The notes under the pieces are model-generated. The model saw only the letters and a list, made by a program, of their open reading frames with translations, was not told the DNA's origin and did not search any database. DNA of 64,000 bases, from positions 186,001-250,000 of the IMG/VR virus record IMGVR_UViG_3300027816_000052; one strand, written 5' to 3'. Each line of letters starts with the position of its first letter. The first letter of the stretch is position 1. The position numbers and the translations under genes were made by a program. Positions 48,215 through 62,609 of the stretch are shown here, in pieces.

Positions 48215-48889
48215 ATGTTAATTACAATAATATCTGATACCCACACAAAACATCATCACATTCCGAAAGAACATCTTCCGGGTGGAGACATGATTATTCA
48301 TTGTGGTGATATTTCTTCGCGTGGTTATAGAGAAGAGGTTAGATTGTTCCTTGAATGGTTTACCGATTTAGATTCCTATACACACAAAGTATTCATTGCT
48401 GGTAATCACGATTTCTTCTTTGAAGATAACCCACTCCAATCAAAGGAATTGGTTCAAGAATATTCAAATATAATTTATCTTCAGGATAATATGGTTGAAA
48501 TTGAGGGGGTCAAAATTTATGGCTCACCTTGGCAACCAGAATTTTATAATTGGGCGTTTAATCTTCCAAGAAACGGTGAAAAACTTAAAGAAAAATGGAA
48601 AGCAATACCGGAGAATATTGATATATTAATTACACATGGTCCACCGTTTGGTTGTTTGGACAAAACAATTCAGGGACAATCCGTTGGATGCGAAATTTTG
48701 ACCGAAGAAATTAAAAGAATTAATCCAATAATTCATTGTTTTGGTCATATTCATTATTCTTATGGTTATATGCAAAGAGACAATATTAATTTTATTAATG
48801 CGTGTTCTCTTGGTGAAAATTATGTTTATCAAAACAAACCTTTGAACATTGATTTGGATATGTCAAATAGAATGATTAGCTTTGTCTAA
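48215..48889 (+). CDS. Metallophosphoesterase
   Basis: SDTH, HCGD, AGNHD, THGPP and FGHIH. Confidence 0.9.
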   Translation: MLITIISDTHTKHHHIPKEHLPGGDMIIHCGDISSRGYREEVRLFLEWFTDLDSYTHKVFIAGNHDFFFEDNPLQSKELVQEYSNIIYLQDNMVEIEGVKIYGSPWQPEFYNWAFNLPRNGEKLKEKWKAIPENIDILITHGPPFGCLDKTIQGQSVGCEILTEEIKRINPIIHCFGHIHYSYGYMQRDNINFINACSLGENYVYQNKPLNIDLDMSNRMISFV

Positions 48890-49047: not shown

Positions 49048-49622
49048 TGTTTAAACATAGTTTTTCATATTATTTTAGAAATACTTGGGAATTTATCCGA
49101 TGGGATATTCCAAGATTTTTTAAGAACATTTGGAGGTTCAGGAGAGAACTTAAATCCTTTGGTGGTTGGGACCGGTATTATACTATCTCAATGCTAAGAA
49201 GGTCTTTGATTACACAGAAAGAATCAATGGAAAAGTTCAGCAATGAATATGAACCAACACTTAGATTGAAACTTTATTATATGAAGAGAGCAATTTATTT
49301 AACGGATTGCATTCTCGAAGATAAATTTCATGATATGGCGGAAGCTAGACTTGGTTATAAAACAGTTTTTAGAGATTTTAAATTTGAACCAATTGAAGGT
49401 TCTACCAGTAAAAGATTGGTTTTTGATGAAGAAAGCGAAGAAGAAAGACAAGCGAACTGGAAAATTTTTGAGGAATCTTCAAAAATTGAGAAAGAAGTTT
49501 GGAATGAACTTTTTGATATTTTAAAAGGCGATATCTATAATGTTGATATGTATACCGAACATAAAGGTAAAGCATATGAAGATGTTCACAATGGTAAGGG
49601 TTTAATTAATTGGTGGTACTAA
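49047..49622 (+). CDS. Hypothetical protein
   Basis: 191-aa ORF. Confidence 0.65.
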   Translation: MFKHSFSYYFRNTWEFIRWDIPRFFKNIWRFRRELKSFGGWDRYYTISMLRRSLITQKESMEKFSNEYEPTLRLKLYYMKRAIYLTDCILEDKFHDMAEARLGYKTVFRDFKFEPIEGSTSKRLVFDEESEEERQANWKIFEESSKIEKEVWNELFDILKGDIYNVDMYTEHKGKAYEDVHNGKGLINWWY

Positions 49623-49634
49623 AAAAATAAAAAC

Positions 49635-49949
49635 ATGTCAGGAGGTTATTTTGATTATAAAAAATATCAACTTAATGATATCATTGATGATATTGAAAGA
49701 GTTTTAAATAGACAAGGAAAAGAAAGACCAAAAGAAGAACGTTGGTGTAGTGATGAATATCTTGAAAAATATCCAGAAGAAAAATATTATCCAACCTATT
49801 CAAAAGAAATTCAAGAAAAATTGCAAGAAGCAATTAAATCATTAACAATTGCAAGAATTTATGTACAAAGAGTTGATTGGTTTTTATCGGGTGATGATGG
49901 CGATGAATCATTCTTGAGAGAATTGTCTGAAGAATTGGATAAGGTATAG
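49635..49949 (+). CDS. Conserved phage hypothetical protein (MSGG family)
   Basis: MSGGYFDY...RVDWFLSGDDG. Confidence 0.65.
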   Translation: MSGGYFDYKKYQLNDIIDDIERVLNRQGKERPKEERWCSDEYLEKYPEEKYYPTYSKEIQEKLQEAIKSLTIARIYVQRVDWFLSGDDGDESFLRELSEELDKV

Positions 49950-49972
49950 ATATTTATTGAAAAATAAAAATC

Positions 49973-50236
49973 ATGAGTACTGAAATGAGAAAACTCATAA
50001 ATGAGTTTAATAACATTAACGAATCAAGTTTAAATAGAATATATAGTCATATTCAAAAATATGAATGCGCAATTATAACAGCGTTTAAAGGTAAGTTAAC
50101 TAACTGTAGAACCGAAAATGATAATGAAAAAAGAATATATATTAGACAGAACAAGGATAGAAATAAACTTTTAAAATCAGCTTTATTATTTTTTGGATAT
50201 CAAATTACAAAAGTAAAAGGTACTTATGTTGAATAA
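49973..50236 (+). pseudogene. Probably 3'-truncated late gene (ESSLNRIY...CAIITAF family)
   Basis: The frame stops at KGTYVE* exactly where a half attC-like site begins. Confidence 0.5.
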
Positions 50237-50274
50237 ACCACAAACCCGCCACTTGCATATACACGCTGTTATAA
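50232..50274 (+). repeat. Truncated attC-like site (right arm only)
   Basis: ATAAACCACAAACC...TATACACGCTGTTATAA resembles the right half of the 54977-55069 site. Confidence 0.65.
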
Positions 50275-50364
50275 GCAGGTGCGGTATTATAGCACAGAAC
50301 TTGATTTGAAAGACGAAACCTTTTTCTTTTCTTTTTGTGTGGTGGGAAAATAAAATTTAAAATA

Positions 50365-52338
50365 ATGAATAAAGTATTATTACCAAAAGAAGAAATTACA
50401 CAGAAGTTAGATAGAGATAAACTTACTTTATTGAACGCTTCTATCAAAGATTATGTGAACAACTTGTATGAAAATTCAAATGATGAATACATTATACAAG
50501 ATGGTGAACCATACGCCAATGGAGAATTACATTTGGGACATTTTTTAAACAAAACCTTGAAAGATTTTGTTGTAAAATATTACTTAACAAAAGGTAAGAA
50601 AGTTAGGGTTTCATTTGGTTGGGACTGTCATGGTTTACCCATTGAAAATAAAGCAAAAGAAATGAGTGGTGATTTAATTCAAAATGCTAAATTAGTCGCA
50701 ACCAAATATTGTGATATTCAAAATAAAACTCTTGAACTTTTCGGGATTTATCCAACTGAAGGTAGGTTTAAAACTATGGATATTGATTTTATAGAAAGAG
50801 AATTATATATATACCACCAACTACTAAATGCGGGTCTAATTCTTAAAAAGAATAAGCCTACTTGGTACTCACCAACATTAAAAACAGTATTGGCTAACTC
50901 AGAAATTGAATATAAAAAAATAGAAGATGAATCTTTGTATTTTCTATTCAACTCTGATAGTTTTAAATTACTTGTTTGGACAACAACAGAATGGACTGTA
51001 AACGGAAATCAGGCAGTATGTTTAAGTAATAATATAAAATATGTTAAAACTGTTGACAATATTATTTGTAGTGAAAGTTTTGCTATTGAAAATAATTTAG
51101 ATTATGATTTGTTTGATGTGAGTAATATTAAGTCATATCATAACCACAATGGAGATTTATGTCCAATTATTTATGATGACTACGTTTCAGATGATAAAAC
51201 AGGTATAGTACATCTTTGCGGTGGACACGGTGATGAAGATTATCGAATTTTAATGGATAATAACATAACCCCCAAAAATGTGTGCGATAAAATCGGCTTA
51301 TTAAAACACATAGAAGATTTTAAAATTGATGAAAAGTTTGTATATAAACGTGAAATTTACACACACGATTATCCAATTGATTGGCGTGAAGGGAATAAGG
51401 TGTATAAAGTATTAACGGAACAAACGTATCTTGATTTTGATTTAAACAAAATAAAGACTTGTTTAAAAGAAATAAAGTTATCATCAAAAGACAGAAATCG
51501 TTTATCAACGACAATATTTTCACGCAAAGATTGGTGTATTTCAAGACAAAGAAAATGGGGTGTTAAAATACCTAATAGTAATGATATATTGGATGTTTGG
51601 TTTGATAGTGGTTCTACATTTATGATGTATGATAAACCTGCCGATATATACATTGAAGGTTCAGACCAACACAGAGGGTGGTTTCAAAGTTCGATTATAT
51701 TAGCATCAATGATTGGTCGAGTACCAACAAAAAGAATAATAACACACGGATTTATTGTTGATAACACATTAGAAAAACTATCAAAATCAAAAGGTAATGG
51801 CGGAAGTTTGGAAAAGCTGTATGAAACATATAACCCTGATGTATTAAGACTATGGGTTTTACTGTCAGATTTTAAAAACGATATTGTCTTTTCGGAAGAT
51901 TCATTAAAAAACTCTGGTAAACAATATTTTAAAATAAGAAACTTTCTCCGTTATTTATTTAATAATCTATATATATATGATTATGATGAAACAAAAGTTG
52001 ATGAAAATATTTTTTTTAAAGTAAAAGAGTTGGAAAATAAATTTGATTTACTTGTCAATGAATTTGATTTGAATAAAGCAGTAAGGGGTTTTGTTGAATT
52101 TATAAACTATTATTCATCTTTGTTGACGGAGGATATTAAAAATGAATTTTATGAATCTGACACAAATTCCAATATGAGAATTAAATATGAAACAGAGTTT
52201 TACTATGTTTTAAAACACTTAAATAAACTACTTTTTTCGATTTTACCATTTCTTTCTATGGAAATAAAAAAAGCGTGGGAAGAAAAAAGAAAAGAAAAAG
52301 ATTTACATGTAGGGACTATATTTGGAAACGAGATGTAG
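50365..52338 (+). CDS. ileS: Minimal isoleucyl-tRNA synthetase (cassette 1)
   Basis: DGEPYANGELHLGH, GWDCHGLPIE, WTTTEWT, DWCISRQR, DVWFDSG, EGSDQHRGWFQS and KLSKS. Likely start at 50365 (657 aa). Confidence 0.9.
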   Translation: MNKVLLPKEEITQKLDRDKLTLLNASIKDYVNNLYENSNDEYIIQDGEPYANGELHLGHFLNKTLKDFVVKYYLTKGKKVRVSFGWDCHGLPIENKAKEMSGDLIQNAKLVATKYCDIQNKTLELFGIYPTEGRFKTMDIDFIERELYIYHQLLNAGLILKKNKPTWYSPTLKTVLANSEIEYKKIEDESLYFLFNSDSFKLLVWTTTEWTVNGNQAVCLSNNIKYVKTVDNIICSESFAIENNLDYDLFDVSNIKSYHNHNGDLCPIIYDDYVSDDKTGIVHLCGGHGDEDYRILMDNNITPKNVCDKIGLLKHIEDFKIDEKFVYKREIYTHDYPIDWREGNKVYKVLTEQTYLDFDLNKIKTCLKEIKLSSKDRNRLSTTIFSRKDWCISRQRKWGVKIPNSNDILDVWFDSGSTFMMYDKPADIYIEGSDQHRGWFQSSIILASMIGRVPTKRIITHGFIVDNTLEKLSKSKGNGGSLEKLYETYNPDVLRLWVLLSDFKNDIVFSEDSLKNSGKQYFKIRNFLRYLFNNLYIYDYDETKVDENIFFKVKELENKFDLLVNEFDLNKAVRGFVEFINYYSSLLTEDIKNEFYESDTNSNMRIKYETEFYYVLKHLNKLLFSILPFLSMEIKKAWEEKRKEKDLHVGTIFGNEM

Positions 52339-52345
52339 CACTTGC

Positions 52346-52465
52346 TTATAACGGTTGCAAATATAAAACGTTTTAAACTAAACTTAAATTGAAAAACAGT
52401 ATATAAATATAAACCAACAATAAATTTGGAACGCTGAAATAAATGTTTTATATTTGTTGTTATAA
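52346..52465 (+). repeat. attC-like hairpin (120 bp)
   Basis: TTATAAC-GGTTG-CAAATATAAAAC...GTTTTATATTTG-TT-GTTATAA. Confidence 0.85.
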
Positions 52466-52485
52466 ACACGTTAAATTATTTTATT

Positions 52486-52764
52486 ATGAAAACATATAAT
52501 GTAAAGTATGATGTTGGACAAGAAGTATATATACTTTTATCCAAAAAAATATTTAAAAGTAAAATTGAAAAGATTAGAATTGTTCATGGGGTACCTTATA
52601 TCAAAGGCGAAACAATGGAACAAATGGATGGAATTGAAATTGATTACTTGGTTGTAGTTAATGAACAATTCTATCCTTCAGGTGGACATTTATCTAGTTA
52701 TGATTGGTATAAACAGGATGATATTTTTTTGGATAAAGATGAACTGTTGCGGAAAATAATTTAA
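52486..52764 (+). CDS. Cassette 2 hypothetical protein
   Basis: ORF between the 52459 GTT and the 52775 AAC. Confidence 0.7.
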   Translation: MKTYNVKYDVGQEVYILLSKKIFKSKIEKIRIVHGVPYIKGETMEQMDGIEIDYLVVVNEQFYPSGGHLSSYDWYKQDDIFLDKDELLRKII

Positions 52765-52768
52765 TTGT

Positions 52769-52822
52769 TTATAACGTCTGATGATAAACAATCGTTTTAA
52801 TGTGTTTTATTTGCTGTTATAA
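52769..52822 (+). repeat. attC-like hairpin (54 bp)
   Basis: TTATAAC-GTCTGATGATAAACAATCG...GTTATAA; near-copy of 57404-57457. Confidence 0.8.
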
Positions 52823-52846
52823 GTATGTAATTTACAATTTATACCT

Positions 52847-53092
52847 ATGAAAAAAACGAAAAGAAAAATACATATTGGAAATGACCTATGGTTTTATTGG
52901 GTTGGTTCTGGTAGATGGGGTGAGGTAACTCATGTAACGATATGTTCACCAGATGAACAATATTATAAAATAGATGCAAGTGATGTTGCAAGTAGTGAAA
53001 TGTATGTTGGTGCGGAAGGGTCATTTCCAACACAAATATTACCGTCAAAAGTTAAAGAATATATTGAAAATAAAATAATAAATAAATTTTAA
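52847..53092 (+). CDS. Cassette 3 hypothetical protein
   Basis: ORF between hairpins. Confidence 0.7.
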   Translation: MKKTKRKIHIGNDLWFYWVGSGRWGEVTHVTICSPDEQYYKIDASDVASSEMYVGAEGSFPTQILPSKVKEYIENKIINKF

Positions 53093-53100
53093 ATTATTAC

Positions 53101-53195
53101 TTATAACGGTTGGGTGTATGAGAAGGTTTGCTTAGATGAACTTTCAAATTAACCACTGAACTTTATAGCAAACTTTCTTATACACCTTGTTATGT
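53101..53195 (+). repeat. attC-like hairpin (95 bp)
   Basis: GGTGTATGAGAAGGTTTGCT / AGCAAACTTTCTTATACACC stem. Confidence 0.88.
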
Positions 53196-53263
53196 GTAGG
53201 TGTGGTTAATTAAGGTAGAATGTTAAATAGTAGAAATGAACAAAAATTTTAAAAGAAAAATAT

Positions 53264-53674
53264 ATGAATTATAAACAAAAAATTACAACTATCAATTATT
53301 TTGAAAAGGTGGTTAAAATTTCTCTAACAAGAGAAGAGTGGAATTCATCTGGAACTTGGGTAGAGTCAATGATGAAAAAAGGTTGTGAAAGACTGAGTAA
53401 GGATTGGTTTGAAGATTTACATCACTTAGTTATGCGACCAATAAGTGACGAAATAAACTTTTCTGGTAAAAACTATACTTATGATGTGGATATAACATTT
53501 GATATACCAAGAGAATTACTGAGAATGTTTGTATATTCAATCGGTCAAATTGCTTATGATTTTGATGTTAAAGGTATAACTTCGGTTACTGCTCAAAATA
53601 TAGTGGGAAAAATAAACAAACAATTAAAAGAACAACTACCAAATGATGATAAATGGTTTCATTATGGATTTTGA
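53264..53674 (+). CDS. Cassette 4 hypothetical protein
   Basis: ORF between hairpins. Confidence 0.7.
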   Translation: MNYKQKITTINYFEKVVKISLTREEWNSSGTWVESMMKKGCERLSKDWFEDLHHLVMRPISDEINFSGKNYTYDVDITFDIPRELLRMFVYSIGQIAYDFDVKGITSVTAQNIVGKINKQLKEQLPNDDKWFHYGF

Positions 53675-53732
53675 TTTTTCTTTTAAAATTTTCAACCGAA
53701 ATGTTGATTAGAACGATGAACGGAACGCTTAC

Positions 53733-54208
53733 ACATAACGTATATCGGCTAAACGCAGTATTTAAAAACTTTTGCGAGGGAAATAATTAATCAATTAAAT
53801 AATAATAATTAAAAACAAAAAGTAAAATGGAAATCAAAACAAAATTTGACGTAAACAATTTGGTGAAAAGAAAATTCGACACCAATTCAAAGAACCAGAT
53901 GAGTGCTTTGGAAGTAATGGAAGTGATTGCACAAACTTGCTATGCAGGAACGCAGGTATTTTATTTGTGCAAACATGTAATTGCTCAAAAGGAATTTGTA
54001 GAAAAGTATTCTGAAAAAGGAGAATTTACTTGGGTGATTGCTCACAGTATTTCACAAGAAGAAAATCAGGCAGGATGGAGAAAATACCGTGAAGATGAAT
54101 TGATAGAAGCACCAAAAGAAGTGATTGACATTATACTTGGTAATTCTTAATTGTTCAATTGTGCGGTGGGAAAGTTTTTAAATATTGTCGTTTTAGCCGT
54201 TGTTATGC
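53733..54208 (+). repeat. attC-like hairpin with a gene in its loop (476 bp)
   Basis: CGGCTAAACGCAGTATTTAAAAACTTT pairs with AAAGTTTTTAAATATTGTCGTTTTAGCCG. Confidence 0.8.
53827..54150 (+). CDS. Hypothetical protein inside the attC-like loop
   Basis: 107-aa ORF with an A-rich leader. Confidence 0.7.
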   Translation: MEIKTKFDVNNLVKRKFDTNSKNQMSALEVMEVIAQTCYAGTQVFYLCKHVIAQKEFVEKYSEKGEFTWVIAHSISQEENQAGWRKYREDELIEAPKEVIDIILGNS

Positions 54209-54273
54209 GAAGGTGTGGCAACTCCAAAATTTCAAATTATAGACAAAACTTTCTTGCCACACTTTTGCATAAC
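54202..54273 (+). mobile_element. Empty cassette body (cassette 5, 72 bp)
   Basis: GTTATGCGAAGGTGTGGCAA...TTGCCACACTTTTGCATAAC with no ORF between. Confidence 0.8.
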
Positions 54274-54351
54274 GGTTGTAAATATGAGAAGTAAATTTTA
54301 CCTATAAAAATTAGATAAATCAAAATTTATTTCTTATATTTGTTGTTATAA
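54267..54351 (+). repeat. attC-like hairpin (85 bp)
   Basis: AAATATGAGAAGTAAATTTT / AAAATTTATTTCTTATATTT stem. Confidence 0.85.
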
Positions 54352-54382
54352 GTATGTAAAACAAACTAAATAATAATTAAAT

Positions 54383-54613
54383 ATGAAAATTGAAGGTCAA
54401 ATTACGCTAGATGGTATATTATATACACTGTTTATTTTATTCTGTTTATTTTTAACAATAGGTAGTTCTATTAGTGGGTGGTGGTATTTATCACACTTTG
54501 GATTCAGTGTAAAACAATTTTTGGTAAATATTTTAGTTTCGTCTTCAACTTTATTTATGATCTGGATGATTTTCACTAAAATATTTATTATAAAAATAAA
54601 CAGAATAAAGTAG
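54383..54613 (+). CDS. Cassette 6 small membrane protein (2 TM)
   Basis: Two hydrophobic helices. Confidence 0.7.
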   Translation: MKIEGQITLDGILYTLFILFCLFLTIGSSISGWWYLSHFGFSVKQFLVNILVSSSTLFMIWMIFTKIFIIKINRIK

Positions 54614-54626
54614 TTTGTTTTATTAC

Positions 54627-54757
54627 TTATAACGGTTGAGTATAACCGAAGGTGGGGATTAGAAGTGCCGAACCCTGACTTACCTACAAAAGTAAATTAG
54701 AAGCACAATATCTGAATGTTGGAACTACACCCCACTTTTGGTTATACTTTGTTAGGT
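54627..54757 (+). repeat. attC-like hairpin (131 bp)
   Basis: AGTATAACCGAAGGTGGGG / CCCCACTTTTGGTTATACT stem. Confidence 0.88.
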
Positions 54758-54777
54758 GTATGTAAATTTTACGGATT

Positions 54778-54966
54778 ATGAAAGATATACAACTGTTAAT
54801 TGATATGAAAGTTTCTTTAGGTAGGGAAACATTATTATTTCAGATACTTGGTAAGTATGGTGATAAAATACCAATGGAACTTCAAGAAGAACTACGAAAA
54901 TTGGCAGAAGAAGAAAGAAACTTTGGTGAAATGAAGAAACGAACTTTGAAGGGTGTGTTGGAGTAA
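54778..54966 (+). CDS. Cassette 7 hypothetical protein
   Basis: 62-aa ORF between hairpins. Confidence 0.65.
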   Translation: MKDIQLLIDMKVSLGRETLLFQILGKYGDKIPMELQEELRKLAEEERNFGEMKKRTLKGVLE

Positions 54967-54976
54967 AATTTATTAC

Positions 54977-55069
54977 ACCTAACGGTTGGGTGTATGAAAC
55001 GTAGCCACGCACAATACTTAATATAAACCACAGACCTTAATTGGCTATGTTTTATACACGATGTTAGCA
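54977..55069 (+). repeat. attC-like hairpin (93 bp)
   Basis: GTGTATGAAACGTAGCCA / TGGCTATGTTTTATACAC stem. Confidence 0.88.
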
Positions 55070-55175
55070 GTAGTACGGATTTAAACTACAAATGCTCATT
55101 CGGAGAACTGAACCTTTTTCTTTTCTTTTTTGTGGGTTGGACAAAATAAATTTGAAAAATTTAAAAATAAATAAT

Positions 55176-55409
55176 ATGAAATTAGAAACAATTGTAAAAG
55201 TTACACCAGATGGTGGAGTTGAAATTCCTTCTGATATGAAAGTTGGAACTGGATTGATGAATATGGTAAAAGAATTACGTGATAATGAATGGAGAACATT
55301 TGAACATCACGATAATTGGATTAAAAACGAACATTATCCAAATCCAACATTTGAACAACAATTTGATACAGGTAATGCTTATAAAGAAATGTTAAAAACT
55401 AAAATTTAA
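55176..55409 (+). CDS. Cassette 8 ORF a
   Basis: Likely start at 55176; the track's start at 55092 lies in the cassette flank. Confidence 0.6.
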   Translation: MKLETIVKVTPDGGVEIPSDMKVGTGLMNMVKELRDNEWRTFEHHDNWIKNEHYPNPTFEQQFDTGNAYKEMLKTKI

Positions 55410-55413
55410 AACT

Positions 55414-56013
55414 ATGATGAAAATTGAAGCAAAAAAAGACGGTAAAGGAAACATTGTAATATCGGAAGATTCCTTTGAAATGATACTGGCTTGTTTAGAT
55501 AATCAAAAATTTGTTGGTGAACAGCCACAAAATGGTGATTCGCTTTCGGTAGGCGAAGACAACTATTGGAAAGGACAAGAAGATATTCAAAACACTATTG
55601 ACCATTATAATAGAGAATGTAGAAAAATATTACATCAAAAATATGTTTTAAGAACAGAATCTGATGGTTATTTTCTTGCTAAAAAATATGAACATCAAAC
55701 AGAAGATACTGAATGGACTGGTGAAGATGTTGGATTAGTGTATGAACTATTCAAAGATACAAGAATAATTTATAATGAAACAAGAGATTTATTACCATTA
55801 GATGGTAGTGAAGAAATTAAGGAAGGAAGTACTCCAATTGGTAAAACAAAAGATGGGTGGATTGCAGTTGAACAAGAATCAAGACCTTGGTTAATTGAAA
55901 GAGCATTGGGATATGATGGTGATTATTTAACAATTTCTGAAGATGGCAGTAAGAATAGACCTTGGAAACAAGATGAAATTCGAAAAATTATAAACATATT
56001 TAATAATAAATAA
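55414..56013 (+). CDS. Cassette 8 ORF b
   Basis: 199-aa ORF. Confidence 0.7.
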   Translation: MMKIEAKKDGKGNIVISEDSFEMILACLDNQKFVGEQPQNGDSLSVGEDNYWKGQEDIQNTIDHYNRECRKILHQKYVLRTESDGYFLAKKYEHQTEDTEWTGEDVGLVYELFKDTRIIYNETRDLLPLDGSEEIKEGSTPIGKTKDGWIAVEQESRPWLIERALGYDGDYLTISEDGSKNRPWKQDEIRKIINIFNNK

Positions 56014-56014
56014 A

Positions 56015-56422
56015 ATGGGAATATTTGATTGTTTAATAGATAAAGACAATGGAAAACCAAAATCTGATATGGAATATATTTACAGATTAGATATGGTTTG
56101 GATACCTAACAAACTTGAAAGTAAACCAATTAAAATTGGAACGATAATGAATAATGTTATTCAACGAGATAATGGCAGTTATGAATTTACTTGTAAAGAA
56201 ACTGGTGAAAGATTACAAGCAACTTATTCTTGGGCTTTGGCTGAAAACACACCAGAAAATGTTGAAAGAATAAAAATATATGATGATGAATATTTAAAAT
56301 TCAAAGAATACGAAAGAAAAATAAATTCTTTGAGAAATAATATTATTACTCTTAAAGAGCGTGGAGAAAAAAGAAAAGAAAAAGATATTGCAGATGAAAC
56401 TCAAATCGGAGAACAAATGTAG
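56015..56422 (+). CDS. Cassette 8 ORF c
   Basis: 135 aa; the C-terminus reads through the cassette 3' flank. Confidence 0.7.
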   Translation: MGIFDCLIDKDNGKPKSDMEYIYRLDMVWIPNKLESKPIKIGTIMNNVIQRDNGSYEFTCKETGERLQATYSWALAENTPENVERIKIYDDEYLKFKEYERKINSLRNNIITLKERGEKRKEKDIADETQIGEQM

Positions 56423-56428
56423 TATTAC

Positions 56429-56487
56429 ACATAACGGTTCGGCGGGTTGCCGTTGTGCATTCAATAACGGCAACCCGACTGTTATGC
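56429..56487 (+). repeat. attC-like hairpin (59 bp)
   Basis: CGGGTTGCCGTT / AACGGCAACCCG perfect stem. Confidence 0.88.
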
Positions 56488-56527
56488 GGGGTCATTCTTT
56501 TTCACTCGGTAAAAAGCAAAAGGTACA

Positions 56528-56830
56528 ATGGCAAAAAGGAAGTTAGGCCCATCGAGCGGCAAGTGCTCCAAGTGCGGAGGTCACATCAGCATCAATCCAC
56601 CAAGACCGTGCCGCCGCTGCTCAGGCGAAAAGCCTCAGGCGAGCTCGGAAAAGAAAGAGCGCGTGTTCACCGAGAGCGAGGTGAAGGCGATGGTGCGAGA
56701 GATTCTCGCAGAACAGGAACGACTGCATATAAGCGATGGATCCGGAGGACACGATATTGTGTGGGCGGTCGGGATCGGAGAGGTCGAGGCGGTGTTTAAA
56801 GCGCACGGCATTGTTCTCGATCCCGCATAA
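56528..56830 (+). CDS. Cassette 9 GC-rich zinc-ribbon protein
   Basis: CSKC...CRRC; the stop codon TAA lies inside the GCATAAC core. Confidence 0.7.
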   Translation: MAKRKLGPSSGKCSKCGGHISINPPRPCRRCSGEKPQASSEKKERVFTESEVKAMVREILAEQERLHISDGSGGHDIVWAVGIGEVEAVFKAHGIVLDPA

Positions 56831-56954
56831 CGGTTGACGGTATGAAAAGTTGGGGATTAAAAGATATAAACTTTCGCACCGATACAATGATAATTAATAG
56901 TACAAACCTTCGGGAACGCACACACGCCCCAATTTTTTATACCGTGTGTTATGC
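56825..56954 (+). repeat. attC-like hairpin (130 bp)
   Basis: ACGGTATGAAAAGTTGGGG / CCCCAATTTTTTATACCGT stem. Confidence 0.88.
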
Positions 56955-56975
56955 CCCGTTTTTATCCAATTTTTT

Positions 56976-57398
56976 ATGTTACAAGACGAATTAGCATTAC
57001 AATATAAATACAAAAAACTTCCATCAGAATTATCTGACAAGGTAAGAAACCAATATTTGTCTGAAATACCAAAATGTTTGAATATCAATGGTGATTCTGA
57101 ATTTGAGTTAAAAACAGCAAACGGTACAATAATTTCAAAAGGATATGAAAGAATTGTAATTGGAGATTATGGAGCGTTTATTGAATTTAACAGAAATCAA
57201 GTTATTGACGAAAATATTTGTATTCAAAAGGGGCAAGAATATAGAATTAACGATGAAAAATATAGTAAGAATGTGAAATATTTTTGGTTGACTGCAAAAG
57301 ATTCATCGTGTATAAAGATATATTTACAACAGAAAACGGTATCATACGCAGATTATAAACCAAATATGTATTACGTGTCTCCATTTGAGGTTTTTTAA
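56976..57398 (+). CDS. Cassette 10 hypothetical protein
   Basis: GYERIVIGDYGAFIEF; likely start at 56976. Confidence 0.7.
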   Translation: MLQDELALQYKYKKLPSELSDKVRNQYLSEIPKCLNINGDSEFELKTANGTIISKGYERIVIGDYGAFIEFNRNQVIDENICIQKGQEYRINDEKYSKNVKYFWLTAKDSSCIKIYLQQKTVSYADYKPNMYYVSPFEVF

Positions 57399-57403
57399 AT
57401 GGG

Positions 57404-57457
57404 GAATAACGTCCGATGATAAACAATCGTTTTAATGTTGTTTATCATTTGTTATGT
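57404..57457 (+). repeat. attC-like hairpin (54 bp)
   Basis: ATGATAAACA / TGTTTATCAT stem. Confidence 0.85.
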
Positions 57458-57536
57458 GTAGGTGTGGATTATTAAGGTGGAATGTTTAATCGGAGAACTG
57501 AACAAAAATTTTAAAAGAAAAATTAATATATAGATT

Positions 57537-57761
57537 ATGGGAAACATAGTTAAAAAATTTGAAAACTTTAAAGATGGGTTATACGTCACATGTAAAAACG
57601 CACCAGAAGATAATTACCAACTTCATAATAAAAAGGATTATTTGGTTATTAAATATGATAACCAACCGTATGGTGTTGGACGAGTAACTATATTTAACCC
57701 TTCAAGTAGAAAGGAAGAAACATATCCTAAAACTATGTTTAGTGAACCATTTAACAAATAA
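57537..57761 (+). CDS. Cassette 11 hypothetical protein
   Basis: 74-aa ORF. Confidence 0.65.
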   Translation: MGNIVKKFENFKDGLYVTCKNAPEDNYQLHNKKDYLVIKYDNQPYGVGRVTIFNPSSRKEETYPKTMFSEPFNK

Positions 57762-57819
57762 TTTTTCTTTTAAAATTTTAAACATAGATGTTGATTAGAA
57801 CGATGGGTGGAACACTTAC

Positions 57820-57952
57820 ACATAACGTTTCGCAGCTTGGCGAGGTGCGGGATTTACAGCACTAAAGACGATTAGAATTACAAATTTTTAAATAAAAAAC
57901 AATATGTCAAACGAAGTACAAAACCCCGCATCTTGCCAAACTGCTGTTATAT
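57820..57952 (+). repeat. attC-like hairpin (133 bp) containing the start codon of the next gene
   Basis: GCAGCTTGGCGAGGTGCGGG / CCCGCATCTTGCCAAACTGC stem; ATG at 57904. Confidence 0.88.
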
Positions 57953-58185
57953 GCCGCCTTTTTGATTTGGGAAGGAAAGGGTTAACATGGGATTGGTCAA
58001 AATTGGAACTGAAAAAACAATACTTTATCAGTCGTGAAGATGTTTTGAATATGAATATGCTTTGGCAACTTGCACAAGGTGGTATAACTGAACAAGCACA
58101 ATCTTTGAATGCAGAAGTATTGATTTGGGAAGATGTCATAAAAAACGGATGGTACTTGTTGCTGAGACCGCAAGGTGGCATATAA
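57904..58185 (+). CDS. Cassette 12 protein starting within the upstream hairpin
   Basis: The first ~15 codons (MSNEVQNPASCQTAV) are hairpin sequence. Confidence 0.65.
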   Translation: MSNEVQNPASCQTAVICRLFDLGRKGLTWDWSKLELKKQYFISREDVLNMNMLWQLAQGGITEQAQSLNAEVLIWEDVIKNGWYLLLRPQGGI

Positions 58186-58313
58186 CGGTTTGCGTATTGC
58201 TGACGTTGCCAATTTGAAACACAAATGTTGAATTAAAAACAAAAAAATAAATATGAAAATCAGAGTTGAAGTTAAAGACGAAGCTGGCAATGTTCAGCAA
58301 TACGTTGTTAGGC
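58180..58313 (+). repeat. attC-like hairpin (134 bp) containing the start codon of the next gene
   Basis: CGTATTGCTGACGTTGCCA / TGGCAATGTTCAGCAATACG stem; ATG at 58253. Confidence 0.88.
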
Positions 58314-58471
58314 GCAGTTACTTGGTCAAATTTGTTGACCCGAAGAAAGAGTATCCTGTTACCTACACAATTAAACACGATGGCACAAGAGTAAATGAAC
58401 CTGCAATGCTCAAAGGCGAAGATTTAACCGAAAATCAAATTGCACAACTTTTCTCGAAGGGTTTGTTGTAA
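58253..58471 (+). CDS. Cassette 13 protein starting within the upstream hairpin
   Basis: The first ~19 codons (MKIRVEVKDEAGNVQQYVV) are hairpin sequence. Confidence 0.65.
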   Translation: MKIRVEVKDEAGNVQQYVVRRSYLVKFVDPKKEYPVTYTIKHDGTRVNEPAMLKGEDLTENQIAQLFSKGLL

Positions 58472-58475
58472 TTGC

Positions 58476-58570
58476 GCCTAACGATTGGGTGTATATGTAG
58501 TTTTTTATTTGGAAATGTCAAAACTTATTCGTACCTTTGTAAAAAAAATTACATATACACCTTGTTATGT
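58476..58570 (+). repeat. attC-like hairpin (95 bp) with a promoter in its loop
   Basis: GGTGTATATGTAGTTTTTT / AAAAAATTACATATACACC stem. Confidence 0.88.
58508..58539 (+). promoter_or_regulatory. Bacteroidota housekeeping-type promoter inside the attC-like loop
   Basis: TTTG-N20-TACCTTTG. Confidence 0.75.
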
Positions 58571-58601
58571 ATAGTTTATTCACAAATTAAAATAAAAGTT
58601 T

Positions 58602-58808
58602 ATGAAACAACCAAAAATTAAAATAACCGACATTCACGGTAAAGACTGGGGTATTAAAAAAGTAAAAACACTTCATTGGAATTTGGACGGAAAATTAAAC
58701 ACAATTCAAGTTGATTTTTCTGGAACTATGGATATGTATGATTTAGATGATGAAGGCGTTTTTACTAATCCACATGGTAATATGAAAGGCGTTATCATTT
58801 GGGAATAA
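58602..58808 (+). CDS. Cassette 14 hypothetical protein
   Basis: 68-aa ORF. Confidence 0.65.
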   Translation: MKQPKIKITDIHGKDWGIKKVKTLHWNLDGKLNTIQVDFSGTMDMYDLDDEGVFTNPHGNMKGVIIWE

Positions 58809-58813
58809 ATTAT

Positions 58814-58866
58814 ACATAACTAGTATATATAAGTAAGTATAATCTAACCACTTAAAAATAAAGGAC
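58814..58866 (+). other. Candidate attI-like half-site between the last cassette and the recombinase
   Basis: ACATAAC is followed by TAGTATATATAAGTAAG rather than by a hairpin; no partner GTT arm. Confidence 0.5.
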
Positions 58867-59667
58867 TTGAATAATAAAATTATTAAGATTTGTGAAGAAA
58901 AGTTTATATATTTAAACTATTCACCAAGAACAAAAGATAATTATCTTTCACATATAAAAAATTTCTTAAATCACATTGGTAGTAAACAAGTAATACATTG
59001 TAATGCTCAAGATTTTCAATCCTATTTAGATAATTATAAATTCACTTCAACAGCACAACAAAACCAAATCATTAACGCAATAAGATTTCTCTACAAATTT
59101 GGTCTTAATAAAAAATATGATAAAATATCGTTTAAAAGACCTAAATCTGAGAAGAAACTACCAAAAGTAATTGATTCAAATTCAATCATTGATAAATTAA
59201 ATAAGATTGATAATCTCAAACACAAAGCAATTCTCACCTTAACTTTTTCAGTTGGTCTACGAGTCTCAGAAATAATTAATCTTAAAATAGAGGATATTGA
59301 TTCCAAGCGAATGTTAATCCACATTAAGAACGCAAAAGGAAGAAAAGATAGAGTTGTTCCATTATCTCAAAATGTATTAAGACTATTAAGAACTTATTAT
59401 AAAAATTATATCCCAAAGGAATATCTCTTCAATGGACAAAACAGTACTAAATATTCAATAGGTAGTTGTCAGAAAATATACAAAAAATATATTGAATCTG
59501 ATGGACATATACACACACTTAGACACAGTTTTGCAACATCCTTATTAGAAAATGGAACAGATTTAAGAATTATTCAAAAAATTCTTGGTCATTCAAATGT
59601 TAAAACCACAGAAATATACACACACGTTTCAAATCAAATTTTGAACAAAATTAATTTGCCAGTTTGA
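58867..59667 (+). CDS. Compact tyrosine recombinase (integron-integrase-like, lacking the IntI insertion)
   Basis: SAM-like N-terminus YSPRTKDNY, GLRVSE (R), AKGRKDR (K), HTLRHSFAT (HxxR), LGH and TEIYTH (Y). TTG start. Confidence 0.92.
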   Translation: MNNKIIKICEEKFIYLNYSPRTKDNYLSHIKNFLNHIGSKQVIHCNAQDFQSYLDNYKFTSTAQQNQIINAIRFLYKFGLNKKYDKISFKRPKSEKKLPKVIDSNSIIDKLNKIDNLKHKAILTLTFSVGLRVSEIINLKIEDIDSKRMLIHIKNAKGRKDRVVPLSQNVLRLLRTYYKNYIPKEYLFNGQNSTKYSIGSCQKIYKKYIESDGHIHTLRHSFATSLLENGTDLRIIQKILGHSNVKTTEIYTHVSNQILNKINLPV

Positions 59668-59686
59668 AAAGTTTTAGTTATCTTTG
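59655..59686 (+). promoter_or_regulatory. Bacteroidota-type promoter
   Basis: TTTG-N20-TATCTTTG upstream of 59702. Confidence 0.8.
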
Positions 59687-59701
59687 TCAAAAATAACAAA
59701 A

Positions 59702-59983
59702 ATGAAAAAAGAAGTTTTTGAAATTATCATCTGGAATGATACATTTGGAAAAGTGGTTGATGAAAGATTTGTTGATGAAACACAATTTTCGATTTTTTTG
59801 AAAGCGATTAAGGGTTGCTTGGATACAACACAAGATTTTAGTTATTTTAATGGAAAAAACTTTTTAATCCACATTCCTTTTGCAGTTTTGAAAAATAGCG
59901 TTATCTTTACCAAAGAAAATGAAATTGGTGTAAGTGAAATCATTAAATCAAAAGCTGAAGCTCTAACAACTAAAACAAAATAA
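59702..59983 (+). CDS. Hypothetical protein
   Basis: ATG at 59702, downstream of a promoter. Confidence 0.65.
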   Translation: MKKEVFEIIIWNDTFGKVVDERFVDETQFSIFLKAIKGCLDTTQDFSYFNGKNFLIHIPFAVLKNSVIFTKENEIGVSEIIKSKAEALTTKTK

Positions 59984-59987
59984 TAAA

Positions 59988-60137
59988 ATGGGAAAACTTT
60001 TCAAAATCATTCTTGGTGTTATTTTGGTATACATTGGCGGAAAAATGGTTTACAACAATGTAAAAGGTAAAAAAGATGAAGAATTTAATTTTAATGATTT
60101 TAAAGACTTGAAAGCAATTAAAGATATTGAATTTTAA
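59988..60137 (+). CDS. Small single-TM protein (49 aa, not in the track)
   Basis: MGKLFKIILGVILVYIGGKMV... Confidence 0.55.
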   Translation: MGKLFKIILGVILVYIGGKMVYNNVKGKKDEEFNFNDFKDLKAIKDIEF

Positions 60138-61628: not shown

Positions 61629-62609
61629 ATGAAAGACGCAACGATTGAAATTATTTCTGAAGTCAAAGCTCATCCTGATGCAGATAGACTTGATCTTGTT
61701 AAGATTCTTGGGTTTCAATGCGTTACACAAAAAGGACTTTATAAGGGTGGTGAGAAAATTGTTTATATTCGACCTGATGCGGTTCTTCCTATTGAACCTT
61801 GGACTGAAGAGTATCGAAAATATTCACCAAAACGAATCAAAGCTGTAAAACTTCGTGGCGAATTTAGTGAAGGTATTATTGTTAGGTTTGAACAACTTCC
61901 AGTTGATTTATCAAATCTTCAAGTTGGCTCTGATGTGAGTGAACAAATTGGTGTTGTTCATTATGAAGCACCACAACCACAAGATCTTCAAGCAAAAGGT
62001 TATCTTCCGGTTGGAATTGGTCCCACTGATGAAATTCGATTTGAGAATATCATTGATGAACTTCCATTCGGTTCAATTGTTGATGTTACATCTAAAGTTG
62101 ATGGACAAAGTTGTAGTTTCTATTATAACATTGAAACTGATGAATTTGGTGTTCTTGGAAGAAACTTGGAAATGAAGTTGGATGCGGTAAATAACTATAC
62201 CGCACATGTTGCTCGTTACAACATTAAAAATAAGCTTATTGACTATTGCAAAAAACATAATGTTTCTTTGTGCATTCGTGGTGAGTCGTTTGGTCAAGGG
62301 ATTCAAAGTTCTGGAAACAATCCACATTCTCAAAAACCAAAAGGGTGGGTAATGTTTTCTGTATATAACATTAAAGAACGTAAATATCATAGAAAGAACG
62401 ATAGATTCTATTTTAGAAATGTTGCGCAAGAATTGGAATTACCATTCGTTGATATCATTGAATTGGATGTCGAATTAACTAATGAGTTGATTCAAAAATA
62501 TTCGGTTGGTATTGATAAAATTGAAGGTAAACCTTTTGAGGGTGTTGTAATTAATCATGAAAATGGTTCTTTTAAAGTTATTAACAAATCTTATGATTCT
62601 AAAAAATGA
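61629..62609 (+). CDS. RNA ligase, DRB0094/Rnl5-like family
   Basis: N-terminal HPDADRL...RIKAVKLRGEFSEG module, SKVDGQS (KxDG), RGE, EGVV and SFKVIN. Confidence 0.85.
   Translation: MKDATIEIISEVKAHPDADRLDLVKILGFQCVTQKGLYKGGEKIVYIRPDAVLPIEPWTEEYRKYSPKRIKAVKLRGEFSEGIIVRFEQLPVDLSNLQVGSDVSEQIGVVHYEAPQPQDLQAKGYLPVGIGPTDEIRFENIIDELPFGSIVDVTSKVDGQSCSFYYNIETDEFGVLGRNLEMKLDAVNNYTAHVARYNIKNKLIDYCKKHNVSLCIRGESFGQGIQSSGNNPHSQKPKGWVMFSVYNIKERKYHRKNDRFYFRNVAQELELPFVDIIELDVELTNELIQKYSVGIDKIEGKPFEGVVINHENGSFKVINKSYDSKK

Follow-up and report, generated by a model that had tools for sequence, protein, structure and literature searches.

Integrons, especially sedentary chromosomal integrons, combine an IntI integrase, an attI site and attC-bounded cassettes. 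The cassettes form same-orientation arrays of small, mostly single-gene, hypervariable units separated by imperfect palindromes with AAC...GTT cores. Integrons have also been reported in phages (Qi et al. 2023, PMC9892861), with attC-like sites and cassettes found among others in a Polaribacter (Flavobacteriia) phage. That study describes 3 complete integrons and an In0 in temperate phages, including fragments of host chromosomal integrons and class 1 integrons, and 17 CALINs without an integrase; the illustrated examples have 2-3 predicted attC sites. None of them is a phage-native array of 13-20 sites with its own non-IntI recombinase.

Other systems share features with the locus described here. 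In shufflons, the gene of the Rci tyrosine recombinase lies at the end of a cluster of sfx repeats, but these repeats are inverted and produce inversions within one gene. PeSL (promoter-early stem-loop) cassettes of T4-type phages (Arbiol, Comeau and Krisch, 2010) appear to be stem-loops that lie 5' of small accessory ORFs in hyperplastic regions of large phage genomes and are linked to modular gene shuffling. Finally, XerCD is understood to integrate the folded single-stranded CTX phage genome at dif, so that a simple Xer-type recombinase without the IntI insertion acts on a hairpin folded from one DNA strand.

We examined an array of small gene units in a large uncultured phage (IMG/VR record IMGVR_UViG_3300027816_000052). 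The window, i.e. the whole stretch of DNA that was analysed, is 64 kb long, and all positions refer to it. An earlier note, made from the sequence alone, had interpreted the array as a working integron-like cassette-capture platform. Our analysis supports the integron-like reading, with several corrections. We found no prior description of such a system.

Anatomy of the array

All counts and coordinates given in the earlier note were confirmed. Fourteen units start with GTTA (G at 50268, 52459, 52816, 53189, 54202, 54345, 54751, 55063, 56481, 56948, 57451, 57946, 58307 and 58564) and end with TAAC (C at 52352, 52775, 53107, 53739, 54273, 54633, 54983, 56435, 56831, 57410, 57826, 58186, 58482 and 58820). 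Thirteen hairpins lie between them, twelve measuring 48-128 nt from TAAC to GTTA (54-134 with the 3-nt margins used in the note) and one of 470/476 nt. One refinement concerns the ends: two are incomplete, not one. The left end (50237-50271) is the 3' half of a hairpin, whereas the right end (58817-58866) is not a hairpin but a conserved attI-like junction. The individual parts are as follows, each unit being given together with its upstream hairpin.

50237-52352 (+): unit 1, distal end of the array; truncated hairpin (3' half only, 50237-50271, resembling hairpin H7 on reading) plus body 50268-52352, with a 667-aa IleRS-like class I aminoacyl-tRNA synthetase ORF (50335-52338); ends GTTATAAGCA / TGCTTATAAC are complementary for 10 nt
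52349-52775 (+): unit 2; hairpin H1 (52349-52462) plus body with ORF 52486-52764 (92 aa, no family hit)
52772-53107 (+): unit 3; 48-nt hairpin H2 (52772-52819), of the type that recurs widely in relatives, plus ORF 52847-53092 (81 aa)
53104-53739 (+): unit 4; hairpin H3 (53104-53192; DNA fold z-score -6.1) plus ORF 53264-53674 (136 aa), also flanked by a 19-nt perfect inverted repeat (53243-53261 / 53674-53692)
53736-54273 (+): unit 5; 470-nt hairpin H4 (53736-54205), whose loop contains ORF 53827-54150 (107 aa), plus a 72-bp ORF-less body (54202-54273) that is itself a hairpin
54270-54633 (+): unit 6; hairpin H5 (54270-54348) plus ORF 54383-54613 (76 aa)
54630-54983 (+): unit 7; hairpin H6 (54630-54754) plus ORF 54778-54966 (62 aa)
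54980-56435 (+): unit 8; hairpin H7 (54980-55066) plus a 1373-bp body with three ORFs (55092-55409, 55414-56013, 56015-56422); its ends do not match (complementary run of 4), so it is probably a fusion of units that lost internal hairpins
56432-56831 (+): unit 9, of foreign origin; GC-rich hairpin H8 (56432-56484) plus GC-rich ORF 56528-56830 (100 aa)
56828-57410 (+): unit 10; hairpin H9 (56828-56951) plus ORF ending at 57398 (listed as 56946-57398); the unit ends have one mismatch
57407-57826 (+): unit 11; 48-nt hairpin H10 (57407-57454) plus ORF 57537-57761 (74 aa), with the same shell of flanking inverted repeats as unit 4 (57505-57525 / 57759-57779)
57823-58186 (+): unit 12; hairpin H11 (57823-57949) plus body; ORF 57904-58185 starts inside the hairpin loop and reads through the GTTA core
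58183-58482 (+): unit 13; hairpin H12 (58183-58310) plus body; ORF 58253-58471 starts inside the hairpin loop
58479-58820 (+): unit 14, nearest the recombinase; hairpin H13 (58479-58567) plus ORF 58602-58808 (68 aa); it ends at TAAC and is joined directly to the attI-like site
58817-58866 (+): attI-like insertion site, TAAC|TAGTATATATAAGTAAG..., with no hairpin
58867-59667 (+): tyrosine recombinase, 266 aa, Xer-like

The ends of each unit were compared with one another and with the ends facing them across the hairpins. Own-unit ends are perfectly complementary for exactly 10 nt in 11 of 14 units (mean run 9.0), while ends across a hairpin match for only 4-7 nt (mean run 5.4). When the pairing was permuted 100000 times, the observed value was never reached (maximum 8.0). 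The sequence TAACGGTT occurs 8 times in the window, always inside the array. All 12 short hairpins have invariant TAACG and TGTTA. In the 10 hairpins whose minimum-energy DNA fold closes the outer TAAC/GTTA box, an unpaired stretch of 3-5 nt on the 5' arm precedes the long stem.

The cassettes of the window are ORFans apart from the IleRS-like gene, which matches TIGR00392 (ileS) with 385 bits, below its cutoff of 621, as well as Pfam tRNA-synt_1. Unit 9 is also exceptional: its GC content is 0.45-0.63 (55-60% for the unit) against 0.29 for the window.

This bacterial-like GC content could point to an assembly chimera, or to a bacterial integron fragment mis-binned as viral. We regard this as highly improbable. 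The same 13-kb sequence, including both flanks, was assembled independently in three metagenomes, the array has the 29% GC of its flanks apart from unit 9, and about 80 related IMG/VR contigs show the same arrangement. The closest recombinase relatives in genome collections lie on small MAG contigs. Moreover, the window encodes T4-like RNA ligases and an SbcC-like protein whose nearest relatives are 484-735 kb uncultured phages. The origin from a huge Bacteroidota phage proposed in the earlier note is consistent with the data, although only indirectly supported.

The recombinase and its relatives

Profile searches assigned the recombinase to PF00589 (1.9e-37) and PF13495. It has the SAM-like N-terminal domain and a catalytic domain with intact HxLRH...H...Y motifs. 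The best NCBIfam hit is XerA_Arch at 195 bits (cutoff 220), whereas the integron integrase model TIGR02249 gives 161 bits (cutoff 265), split in two stretches. The best structural relative by sequence is P. abyssi XerA (4a8e). In comparison with VchIntIA (2a3v), 34 residues stand where IntI has 82. The enzyme is thus not an IntI: it is Xer-like, lacks the IntI-specific insertion and scores below every curated IntI cutoff. Since integron integrases need this insertion to recognise folded attC sites (Escudero 2016, PMC4792948; Smyshlyaev 2021, PMC8138268), hairpin recognition would require another solution.

We wondered if similar recombinases are generally accompanied by hairpin arrays. At least 92 recombinase relatives (55-100% identity) were found in IMG/VR contigs of up to 362 kb. 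All 41 loci with at least 5 kb upstream carry a same-strand hairpin array there (1-20 hairpins), with the recombinase in the same place and orientation at the array's end. In these loci, 267 hairpins lie upstream on the + strand, whereas only 12 lie downstream on the + strand and 26 lie on the - strand. Of 603 cassettes elsewhere, 265 have a complementary run of exactly 10 and none has more; position 11 is always G or T opposite T.

In contrast to the cores, hairpin stems are diverse. Among 615 hairpins there are 330 distinct 10-nt arms, with all Watson-Crick pair types at every position. Stem positions 11-16, which were not used for detection, pair in 85-90% of cases, against 42-65% with a random partner. 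The + strand is the more stable in 613 of 675 hairpins; part of this asymmetry is built in, because our detection allowed G·T pairs. To control for this, independent stem positions were examined, and 612 G·T/T·G pairs were found against 48 A·C/C·A pairs. This bias on the sense strand fits an RNA-level role equally well. An ORF starts in the upstream hairpin in 156 of 515 units.

The attI-like motif TAAC|TATnATATATA lies 46-73 nt upstream of the recombinase start and is conserved in most of 67 loci. It marks the junction where relatives carry different units.

Movement of units between arrays

Identical units sit between unrelated neighbours, and 26 homologous cassette pairs have at least one non-homologous neighbour. 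In 6 of 9 independent pairs, the upstream hairpin matches closely (0.9-1.0 identity, 0.7 in one pair) and the downstream hairpin less well (0.41-0.77). Several shared-unit boundaries are, however, uninformative, because one 48-nt hairpin type recurs in many units. Among the related loci (designated L with a number), cassettes L031_c09 and L054_c03 are 100% identical from the TAAC of the upstream hairpin to the TAAC at the unit's end, and nowhere else. L033 and L088 share two units in different order. L004, L017 and L018 have flanks 97-99.6% identical; one unit is internal in L004 and attI-proximal in L017 and L018, with junctions exactly at TAAC. L004 and L005 are 94% identical from immediately after the last TAAC and share no cassettes.

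The foreign unit 9 provides further support. The same hairpin and a homologous ORF occur in arrays of 51-53% GC (L281-L284), with identity bounded by AAC and TAAC, which shows transfer of a unit between 29% and about 52% GC genomes. A further homolog has a compensatory change in the outer box.

These observations bear on the possibility that the hairpins are regulatory stem-loops shuffled by homologous or microhomology recombination, as proposed for PeSL elements, and that the recombinase is an unrelated lysogeny integrase. Hairpin types recur many times (56 copies of one stem arm) and could support homologous exchange, the G·T bias fits RNA, and the nearest cultured relatives of the recombinase are annotated as integrases of Flavobacteriia phages. 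Nevertheless, breakpoints fall exactly at TAAC even where the adjoining hairpins are of unrelated types or where the partner is the hairpin-less attI-like site. The constant position of the recombinase also speaks against this possibility, and the 10-nt complementarity of unit ends with compensatory change has no role in homologous exchange. Sigma-70-like promoters and intrinsic terminators are not enriched. We therefore consider this explanation very unlikely.

Recent exchange of 99-100% identical units shows only at the level of the family that the platform works. The array of this particular phage is identical in the three metagenome assemblies that hold it, and it might be a fossil that no longer recombines. 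The distal hairpin is truncated, unit 8 has mismatched ends, and a second decayed copy, consisting of attI plus the first 47 nt of the recombinase gene, lies elsewhere in the genome. On the contrary, the recombinase ORF is full length with its catalytic motifs, eleven of 14 units keep perfect 10-nt boxes, and the attI-like site matches the family consensus. The three samples may also hold a single clonal population. A frozen array thus remains possible but rather doubtful.

Proposed mechanism and comparison with integrons

Taken together, the locus is best explained, with good though not full confidence, as a phage-borne, integron-type site-specific cassette platform, although there is no direct evidence of excised circles, junction reads or recombinase activity. 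The crossover maps to the TAAC on the 5' side of each hairpin, so the mobile unit is a hairpin followed by its gene, bounded by ...TAA|C on both sides. The hairpin consists of the core TAAC-G, a 3-nt bulge (usually GTT), a 12-20 bp stem of free sequence, a loop of 10-100 nt, and T-GTTA. The 10 nt at the start of the body (GTTA+N6) are complementary to the 10 nt at its end (N6+TAAC). An excised circular unit would therefore fold into a hairpin with a perfect 10-bp outer box, closed by an obligatory mismatch at position 11.

The adjacent recombinase is inferred to exchange strands within the invariant TAAC, with folded single strands as inferred substrate and circles as inferred intermediates. 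Alternatively, it might act on duplex or cruciform DNA in the ordinary Xer/Cre way, the hairpins serving mainly as RNA or expression elements. The plain Xer-like protein without the IntI insertion, the G·T-rich stems on the transcribed sense strand and the ORFs starting inside hairpins are in agreement with this view. However, the hairpin sites and the attI-like site share only TAAC, which is too little for a 6-8 bp homologous overlap with two conserved binding arms in duplex DNA. Stem sequence is free while pairing, the bulge and the spacing are conserved, which indicates recognition of structure. The CTX phage example suggests that a Xer-type enzyme can use hairpin substrates. This alternative thus seems unlikely.

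The array resembles integrons in that each cassette's outer core bases are complementary to its own other end rather than across the hairpin, unpaired bases give the hairpin a polarity, folding is strand-biased, and a dedicated tyrosine recombinase gene is adjacent to a hairpin-less attI-like site where new cassettes appear. Cargo is exchanged between unrelated genomes in both. Apart from the enzyme itself, the differences are as follows. The hairpin is 5' of its ORF, a polarity opposite to that of integron cassettes, and often contains the start codon. The folded strand is the coding (+) strand, not the bottom strand. The outer box is 10 bp with a mismatch at position 11 instead of 7 bp, and the polarity mark is a 3-nt bulge beside the core rather than two separate extrahelical bases. 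The recombinase lies downstream of, and co-directional with, the cassettes, and the host replicon is a large phage. In contrast to shufflons, all sites have one orientation, and whole gene units are gained, lost and moved. In contrast to XerCD/dif and archaeal XerA, where a single site and a single element are served by host-encoded recombinases with no attI-like site next to the enzyme's gene, a cassette array is present.

Under this model, recombination between two hairpin sites excises or reshuffles units, and recombination between a unit's site and the attI-like site, about 50 nt upstream of the recombinase gene, inserts the unit next to the recombinase. The array is co-directional with the surrounding phage genes. 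Because the hairpin lies 5' of its ORF and often contains the start codon, each unit probably carries its own translation start. The anti-defence cargo presumed in the earlier note has support at the level of the family, whose cassettes are hypervariable: 5 DNA methyltransferases, Tad6 (a Thoeris inhibitor) and an ADP-ribosyltransferase were identified among 40 cassette ORFs of relatives.

Structure of the array, its hairpins and its recombinase

Between 50232 and 59667 we find exactly the elements listed in the earlier note, which described an integron-like array ending at a tyrosine recombinase. There are 14 units that begin with GTTA and end with TAAC, and thirteen hairpins separate them. 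The hairpins measure 48-128 nt from TAAC to GTTA, and one measures 470 nt. Features of this region referred to in the text are as follows.

50335-52338, ORF of unit 1, the distal cassette, encoding a 667-aa IleRS-like class I aminoacyl-tRNA synthetase
53189-53739, unit 4
53827-54150, ORF in the loop of the 470-nt element
54202-54273, 72-bp ORF-less unit body following the 470-nt element
56432-56831, unit 9, with GC-rich ORF 56528-56830
57451-57826, unit 11
57904-58185 and 58253-58471, ORFs starting inside hairpin loops and reading through the GTTA core
58817 onward, attI-like site
58867-59667, 266-aa tyrosine recombinase ORF, on the same strand at the right-hand end of the array

In 11 of the 14 units, the 10 nt at the start (GTTA+N6) are the perfect reverse complement of the 10 nt at the end (N6+TAAC), whereas the two sides of a hairpin agree for only 4-7 nt. 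When left and right ends were re-paired at random, the observed mean was never reached (9.0 observed, 8.0 at most in 100000 permutations). Position 11 is never complementary: the right end always has T there, and the left end has G, T or C. The sequence TAACGGTT occurs eight times in the 64-kb window, all inside the array. Since the flanks are inverted complements across the genes and not direct duplications across the hairpins, insertion of the hairpins in the manner of MITEs or REPs was rejected.

All 12 short hairpins share invariant TAACG on the 5' side and TGTTA on the 3' side. Folded as single-stranded DNA, 10 of the 12 close the outer TAAC/GTTA box in the minimum-energy fold. In those, TAAC(G) pairs with (T)GTTA, 3-5 unpaired nucleotides (usually GTT) follow on the 5' arm, and then comes a long uninterrupted stem and a variable loop. 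The 470-nt element is the same structure with a whole ORF in its loop. A scan of 49500-60000 against Rfam 15 at E ≤ 1 gave no family. The hairpins are not intrinsic terminators, and sigma-70-like sites are not enriched (79 sites against 65±7 expected), although Bacteroidota and phage promoters are not covered by that scan.

Some units share further sequence. Units 4 and 11 have nearly the same 5' and 3' non-coding shell, with GTTATGTGTAGGTGTGG… at the start and …CTTACACATAAC at the end. The shell includes perfect 19-21 nt inverted repeats directly flanking the ORF (AAAATTTTAAAAGAAAAA and its complement), while the enclosed ORFs differ (136 aa and 74 aa). The 72-bp ORF-less unit body looks like an empty version of this shell. 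This suggests a second, nested level of modular exchange, for which we have no explanation. Units 1 and 8 share a conserved leader of about 45 nt upstream of their first ORF (50300-50345 and 55110-55165; …GAACCTTTTTCTTTTCTTTTTTGTG…AAAATAAA…), which may be a shared promoter or translation signal.

We next examined the recombinase. The protein has the SAM-like N-terminal domain and the phage-integrase catalytic domain, and the HxLRH, GH and Y motifs are present. Its best curated-model hit is archaeal XerA (XerA_Arch, 195 bits), below the cutoff of 220. Scores for XerC (161 bits, cutoff 335), XerD (159, cutoff 330) and XerS (79, cutoff 267) are also below their cutoffs, and the gene is linked to an array of 13 sites on a phage, not to a single dif site as in chromosome-dimer resolution. 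The integron-integrase models TIGR02249 and NF011946 give 161 bits (cutoff 265) and 107 bits (cutoff 435), the former in two stretches. Against solved structures the best match is P. abyssi XerA. Aligned to VchIntIA (2a3v), query residues 17-174 match 17-177 and 209-257 match 260-308. The alignment thus breaks exactly where IntI carries its extra domain (with the I2 helix), leaving 34 residues here where IntI has 82. The same split of the TIGR02249 match is seen in five relatives, namely the recombinases of related loci L004, L077, L204, L220 and L238. It is therefore a catalytically plausible, simple Xer-like recombinase and not an IntI.

Related arrays and exchange of units

We wondered if similar recombinases and arrays occur in other viruses. 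A scan of IMG/VR with the recombinase found 92 relatives at 55-100% identity, on contigs of up to 362 kb. One hairpin 16-mer alone hit more than 118 viral stretches, one of them on a 465-kb contig. Three contigs from three metagenomes are 100% identical to the window over 13 kb. This excludes a chimera, but it also means that the array of this phage shows no variation in the available data. A metagenome scan for the attI-like 30-mer, performed to find alternative attI-proximal cassettes, returned only the same phage, plus a second partial copy in its own genome. This decayed copy of the array end (contig L290 of the same phage genome, 3743-4493, outside the window) consists of two hairpin-gene units followed by a 94-nt exact copy of the attI-like site plus the first 47 nt of the recombinase gene, after which the sequence is unrelated. 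The last unit joins the attI-like site at …GTTGCACATC|TAG rather than at TAAC, and its two ends are complementary in the reversed sense (…CAAC at the left, GTTG… at the right). This may be a secondary-site event.

To survey the hairpins, a simple detector was written (TAAC, 4-6 nt, a 10-bp stem, the matching stem arm, 1-3 nt, GTTA). It recovers 11 of the 12 short hairpins in the window's array and almost nothing elsewhere. In the 41 related loci with at least 5 kb upstream of the recombinase, every locus has an array on the recombinase's strand, upstream of it (267 hairpins in total, 1-20 per locus). Only 12 hairpins lie downstream on that strand and only 26 lie on the other strand. Shared units always have the same orientation in the plus-strand search performed. 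This is unlike shufflons (Rci), where inverted repeats mediate inversions. Of 603 cassettes from those loci, 265 have an own-end complementary run of exactly 10 nt and none has more, and position 11 is always G or T opposite T.

Hairpin stems are free in sequence but conserved in pairing. Because a MAFFT alignment of the 12 short hairpins aligned only the cores, anchored position-by-position counts were used. There are 330 distinct 10-nt arms among 615 unique hairpins, with all four Watson-Crick pairs at every position. Stem positions 11-16, which the detector did not use, pair in 85-90% of cases, against 42-65% with a random partner.

Units of the family are hypervariable. By tblastn, none of the window's cassette ORFs recurs in the 77 other loci, apart from a weak aaRS match outside an array, so that synteny of cargo cannot be used. 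Cassette proteins of the family fall into 221 clusters, of which 192 are singletons. Even so, some units are shared at 99-100% nucleotide identity between different contigs, with unrelated neighbours. In related loci L031 and L054 the only shared DNA is 315 nt at 100% identity, beginning at the TAAC of the hairpin upstream of the gene and ending at the TAAC at the end of the gene. Loci L033 and L088 share two units in different positions and order. Among nine independent shared-unit pairs, the upstream hairpin matches closely (0.9-1.0 identity, 0.7 in one pair) and the downstream hairpin less well (0.41-0.77) in six, and both hairpins are shared in two. The single apparent exception to the rule that the hairpin travels with the downstream ORF (cassettes L054_c07/L107_c00) involves a recurrent 48-nt hairpin and a cassette with a replaced left end, and is uninformative.

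The clearest case is a trio of phages, L004, L017 and L018, whose recombinase and downstream flank are 97-99.6% identical. A 960-nt unit lies three cassettes from the distal end in L004, whereas the same unit lies directly against the recombinase-proximal site in L017 and L018, and both junctions fall exactly at TAAC. L004 and a further related phage, L005, are 94% identical from the base after the last TAAC onward, and their arrays share nothing.

The sequence between the last TAAC and the recombinase start is not a hairpin. It is conserved across the family as TAAC|TATnATATATA…, 46-73 nt upstream of the start codon, in most of the 67 loci that have enough upstream DNA. The window has TAAC|TAGTATATATAAGTAAG at 58817 onward. 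On this comparative, not experimental, evidence it corresponds to an attI site next to the recombinase gene where cassettes are inserted. The array therefore reads [hairpin-gene]n followed by the attI-like site and then the recombinase. This is the mirror image of intI-attI-[gene-attC]n, with one difference: the ORFs point towards the recombinase, and each hairpin thus lies 5' of its own ORF. Three further observations agree with this polarity. Two ORFs of the window (57904-58185 and 58253-58471) start inside hairpin loops, the same holds for 156 of 515 units in the family, and the GC-rich ORF of unit 9 is preceded by a GC-rich hairpin and followed by an AT-rich one. Many cassette ORFs that start in hairpin loops (in L031, L033, L006, L010, L012 and other related loci) share an N-terminal …(L)NISDV(S) motif, encoded by the conserved 3' stem arm and the core (…ATATCTGAT-GTTAG). 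The recombination site therefore imposes a common peptide on otherwise unrelated proteins.

We also asked which strand folds. At stem positions not used for detection, G·T or T·G pairs on the + strand number 612, while A·C or C·A pairs, which would be wobble pairs on the other strand, number 48. The + strand folds more stably in 613 of 675 hairpins, including all 11 array hairpins recovered in the window. The coding strand is therefore the one selected to fold, which is the opposite of integron attC sites. The same bias would also suit a role in the mRNA, and the two roles are not exclusive.

Unit 9 has 45-63% GC, in a window of 29% GC. Homologs of its protein are encoded on 51-53% GC contigs, preceded by an essentially identical hairpin, and identity with the window starts right after AAC and stops at TAAC. 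Those GC-rich contigs carry arrays of the same architecture (AAC, G, a bulge, a stem, T-GTT, and complementary unit ends). A more distant homolog has GTTAGGCGGG…CCCGCCTAAC where the window has GTTATGCGGG…CCCGCATAAC, a compensatory change in the outer box.

Cargo and genomic context

Pfam and PHROGs searches of the window's cassette ORFs gave nothing beyond the IleRS-like synthetase of unit 1. This protein is much shorter than bacterial IleRS (the ileS model gives 385 bits against a cutoff of 621, in two stretches), and an aaRS as a phage cassette is unusual. Among the 40 longest cassette ORFs of related arrays, Pfam finds five DNA methyltransferases, Tad6 (a type I Thoeris inhibitor, E = 4.6e-41), an ADP-ribosyltransferase, an RNA ligase, an Rv2179c-like exoribonuclease, phosphoesterases, acetyltransferases and a helicase. 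At the level of the family, but not yet for this phage, this fits the suggestion of the earlier note that the cargo serves counter-defence. Two genes that flank the array in the window (48215-48889 and 61629-62609) are a metallophosphoesterase and a PHA02142-type RNA ligase. Their homologs lie upstream of the recombinase, within the range of the array, in several other phages (L006, L010, L031), and both protein families also turn up among cassette ORFs of relatives. Cassettes may become fixed next to the array once they lose their hairpins.

The window is AT-rich, densely coded and nearly unidirectional. It encodes T4-type RNA ligases, an SbcC-like protein and a 633-aa protein (6529-8430) with SprB repeats, which are typical of the gliding-motility adhesins of Bacteroidota. 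The latter could be a host-derived or host-binding module. The nearest relatives of the SbcC-like protein are uncultured phages of 484 and 735 kb. A huge phage of Bacteroidota is the likely source, on indirect evidence only, although no capsid or terminase gene lies in the window. A megablast of 48-62 kb against 50,697 phage records found nothing. The recombinase's nearest cultured relatives are integrases of Cellulophaga and Polaribacter phages, the best hit being 41% identical, in Cellulophaga phage Ingeline. Ingeline has no such array. A single GTTAG…CTAAC palindrome, ACGTGTTAG…CTAACACGT, lies about 80 nt upstream of its integrase gene (8880-8925 of Ingeline_1, MT732435.1), shares the GTTA/TAAC core and may be that enzyme's own site.

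Relatives of the recombinase in genomes are almost all from Bacteroidota, and related arrays were also found in bacterial genome records. In a cultured strain, Aquimarina sp. 2304DJ70-9 (NZ_JBFMKQ010000005.1, locus L238, 9485-19311), a longer recombinase ORF (430 aa as listed) precedes an array. Its cassettes have 10-nt complementary ends (GTTGTACACC…GGTGTACAAC), and its hairpins have the opposite polarity relative to the ORFs, that is, the canonical integron arrangement. In contrast, L204, a 109-kb contig in a Bacteroidales MAG, has the phage-type arrangement. A further related array is that of L220. None of these recombinases passes an IntI cutoff.

Relation to integrons

The system works like an integron with respect to its sites: it has palindromic AAC/GTT sites with polarity marks, own-end complementarity of the cassettes, an attI-like site next to the recombinase, and cassette turnover. 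On the contrary, the protein lacks the IntI insertion and scores below the cutoffs. Cassette design also differs, since the site is 5' of the ORF, the coding strand folds, the outer box is 10 bp with a fixed mismatch, and the polarity mark is a 3-nt bulge. The insertion is described as essential for integron function (PMC8138268; PMC4792948). However, the folded single strand of CTX phage appears to be recombined by XerCD, so a plain Xer-type enzyme acting on hairpins has a precedent. Integrons are regarded as a bacterial device defined by IntI and its special insertion, and their occurrences in phages so far are host-derived fragments or tiny integrase-less clusters, CALINs (PMC9892861). We found no paper describing the present family, within a literature search that did not cover many subscription papers.

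It is likely, on comparative evidence and without demonstration of catalysis, circles or current activity in this particular phage, that the array is an integron-type platform served by the adjacent recombinase. The single-strand mechanism is inferred from the conservation of structure and the strand bias. Most of the remaining doubt concerns variants of the same idea, namely duplex substrates or an array that is frozen in this phage.

With at least 92 members in IMG/VR, on contigs of up to several hundred kb, the family combines hairpin sites, an attI-like site, cassette turnover and capture of cargo from genomes of very different composition with a different recombinase and an inverted cassette design, inside viruses. 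It offers a natural test of which features are really needed for recombination of folded single strands, and the cultured Aquimarina strain may provide an experimental entry point. Its arrays are a catalogue of hundreds of small phage genes which can be screened for anti-defence functions. It also gives a concrete mechanism for the hyperplastic accessory regions of huge phages and for the spread of counter-defence genes among them.

About as likely as not, these arrays represent a separate lineage of integron-type gene-capture machines, either independently evolved or ancestral to IntI, that runs on a plain Xer-like recombinase and is native to large phages, with chromosomal cousins in Bacteroidota such as Aquimarina. 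In this view, cassettes carry their folded recombination site at the 5' end, where it doubles as translation start or leader, and units, including counter-defence genes such as methyltransferases and Tad6, are traded between phages of very different GC content and hence probably different hosts. If so, the IntI insertion is not required for hairpin-based cassette recombination, and phages have their own "adaptation on demand" platform that mirrors the defence-gene integrons of bacteria.
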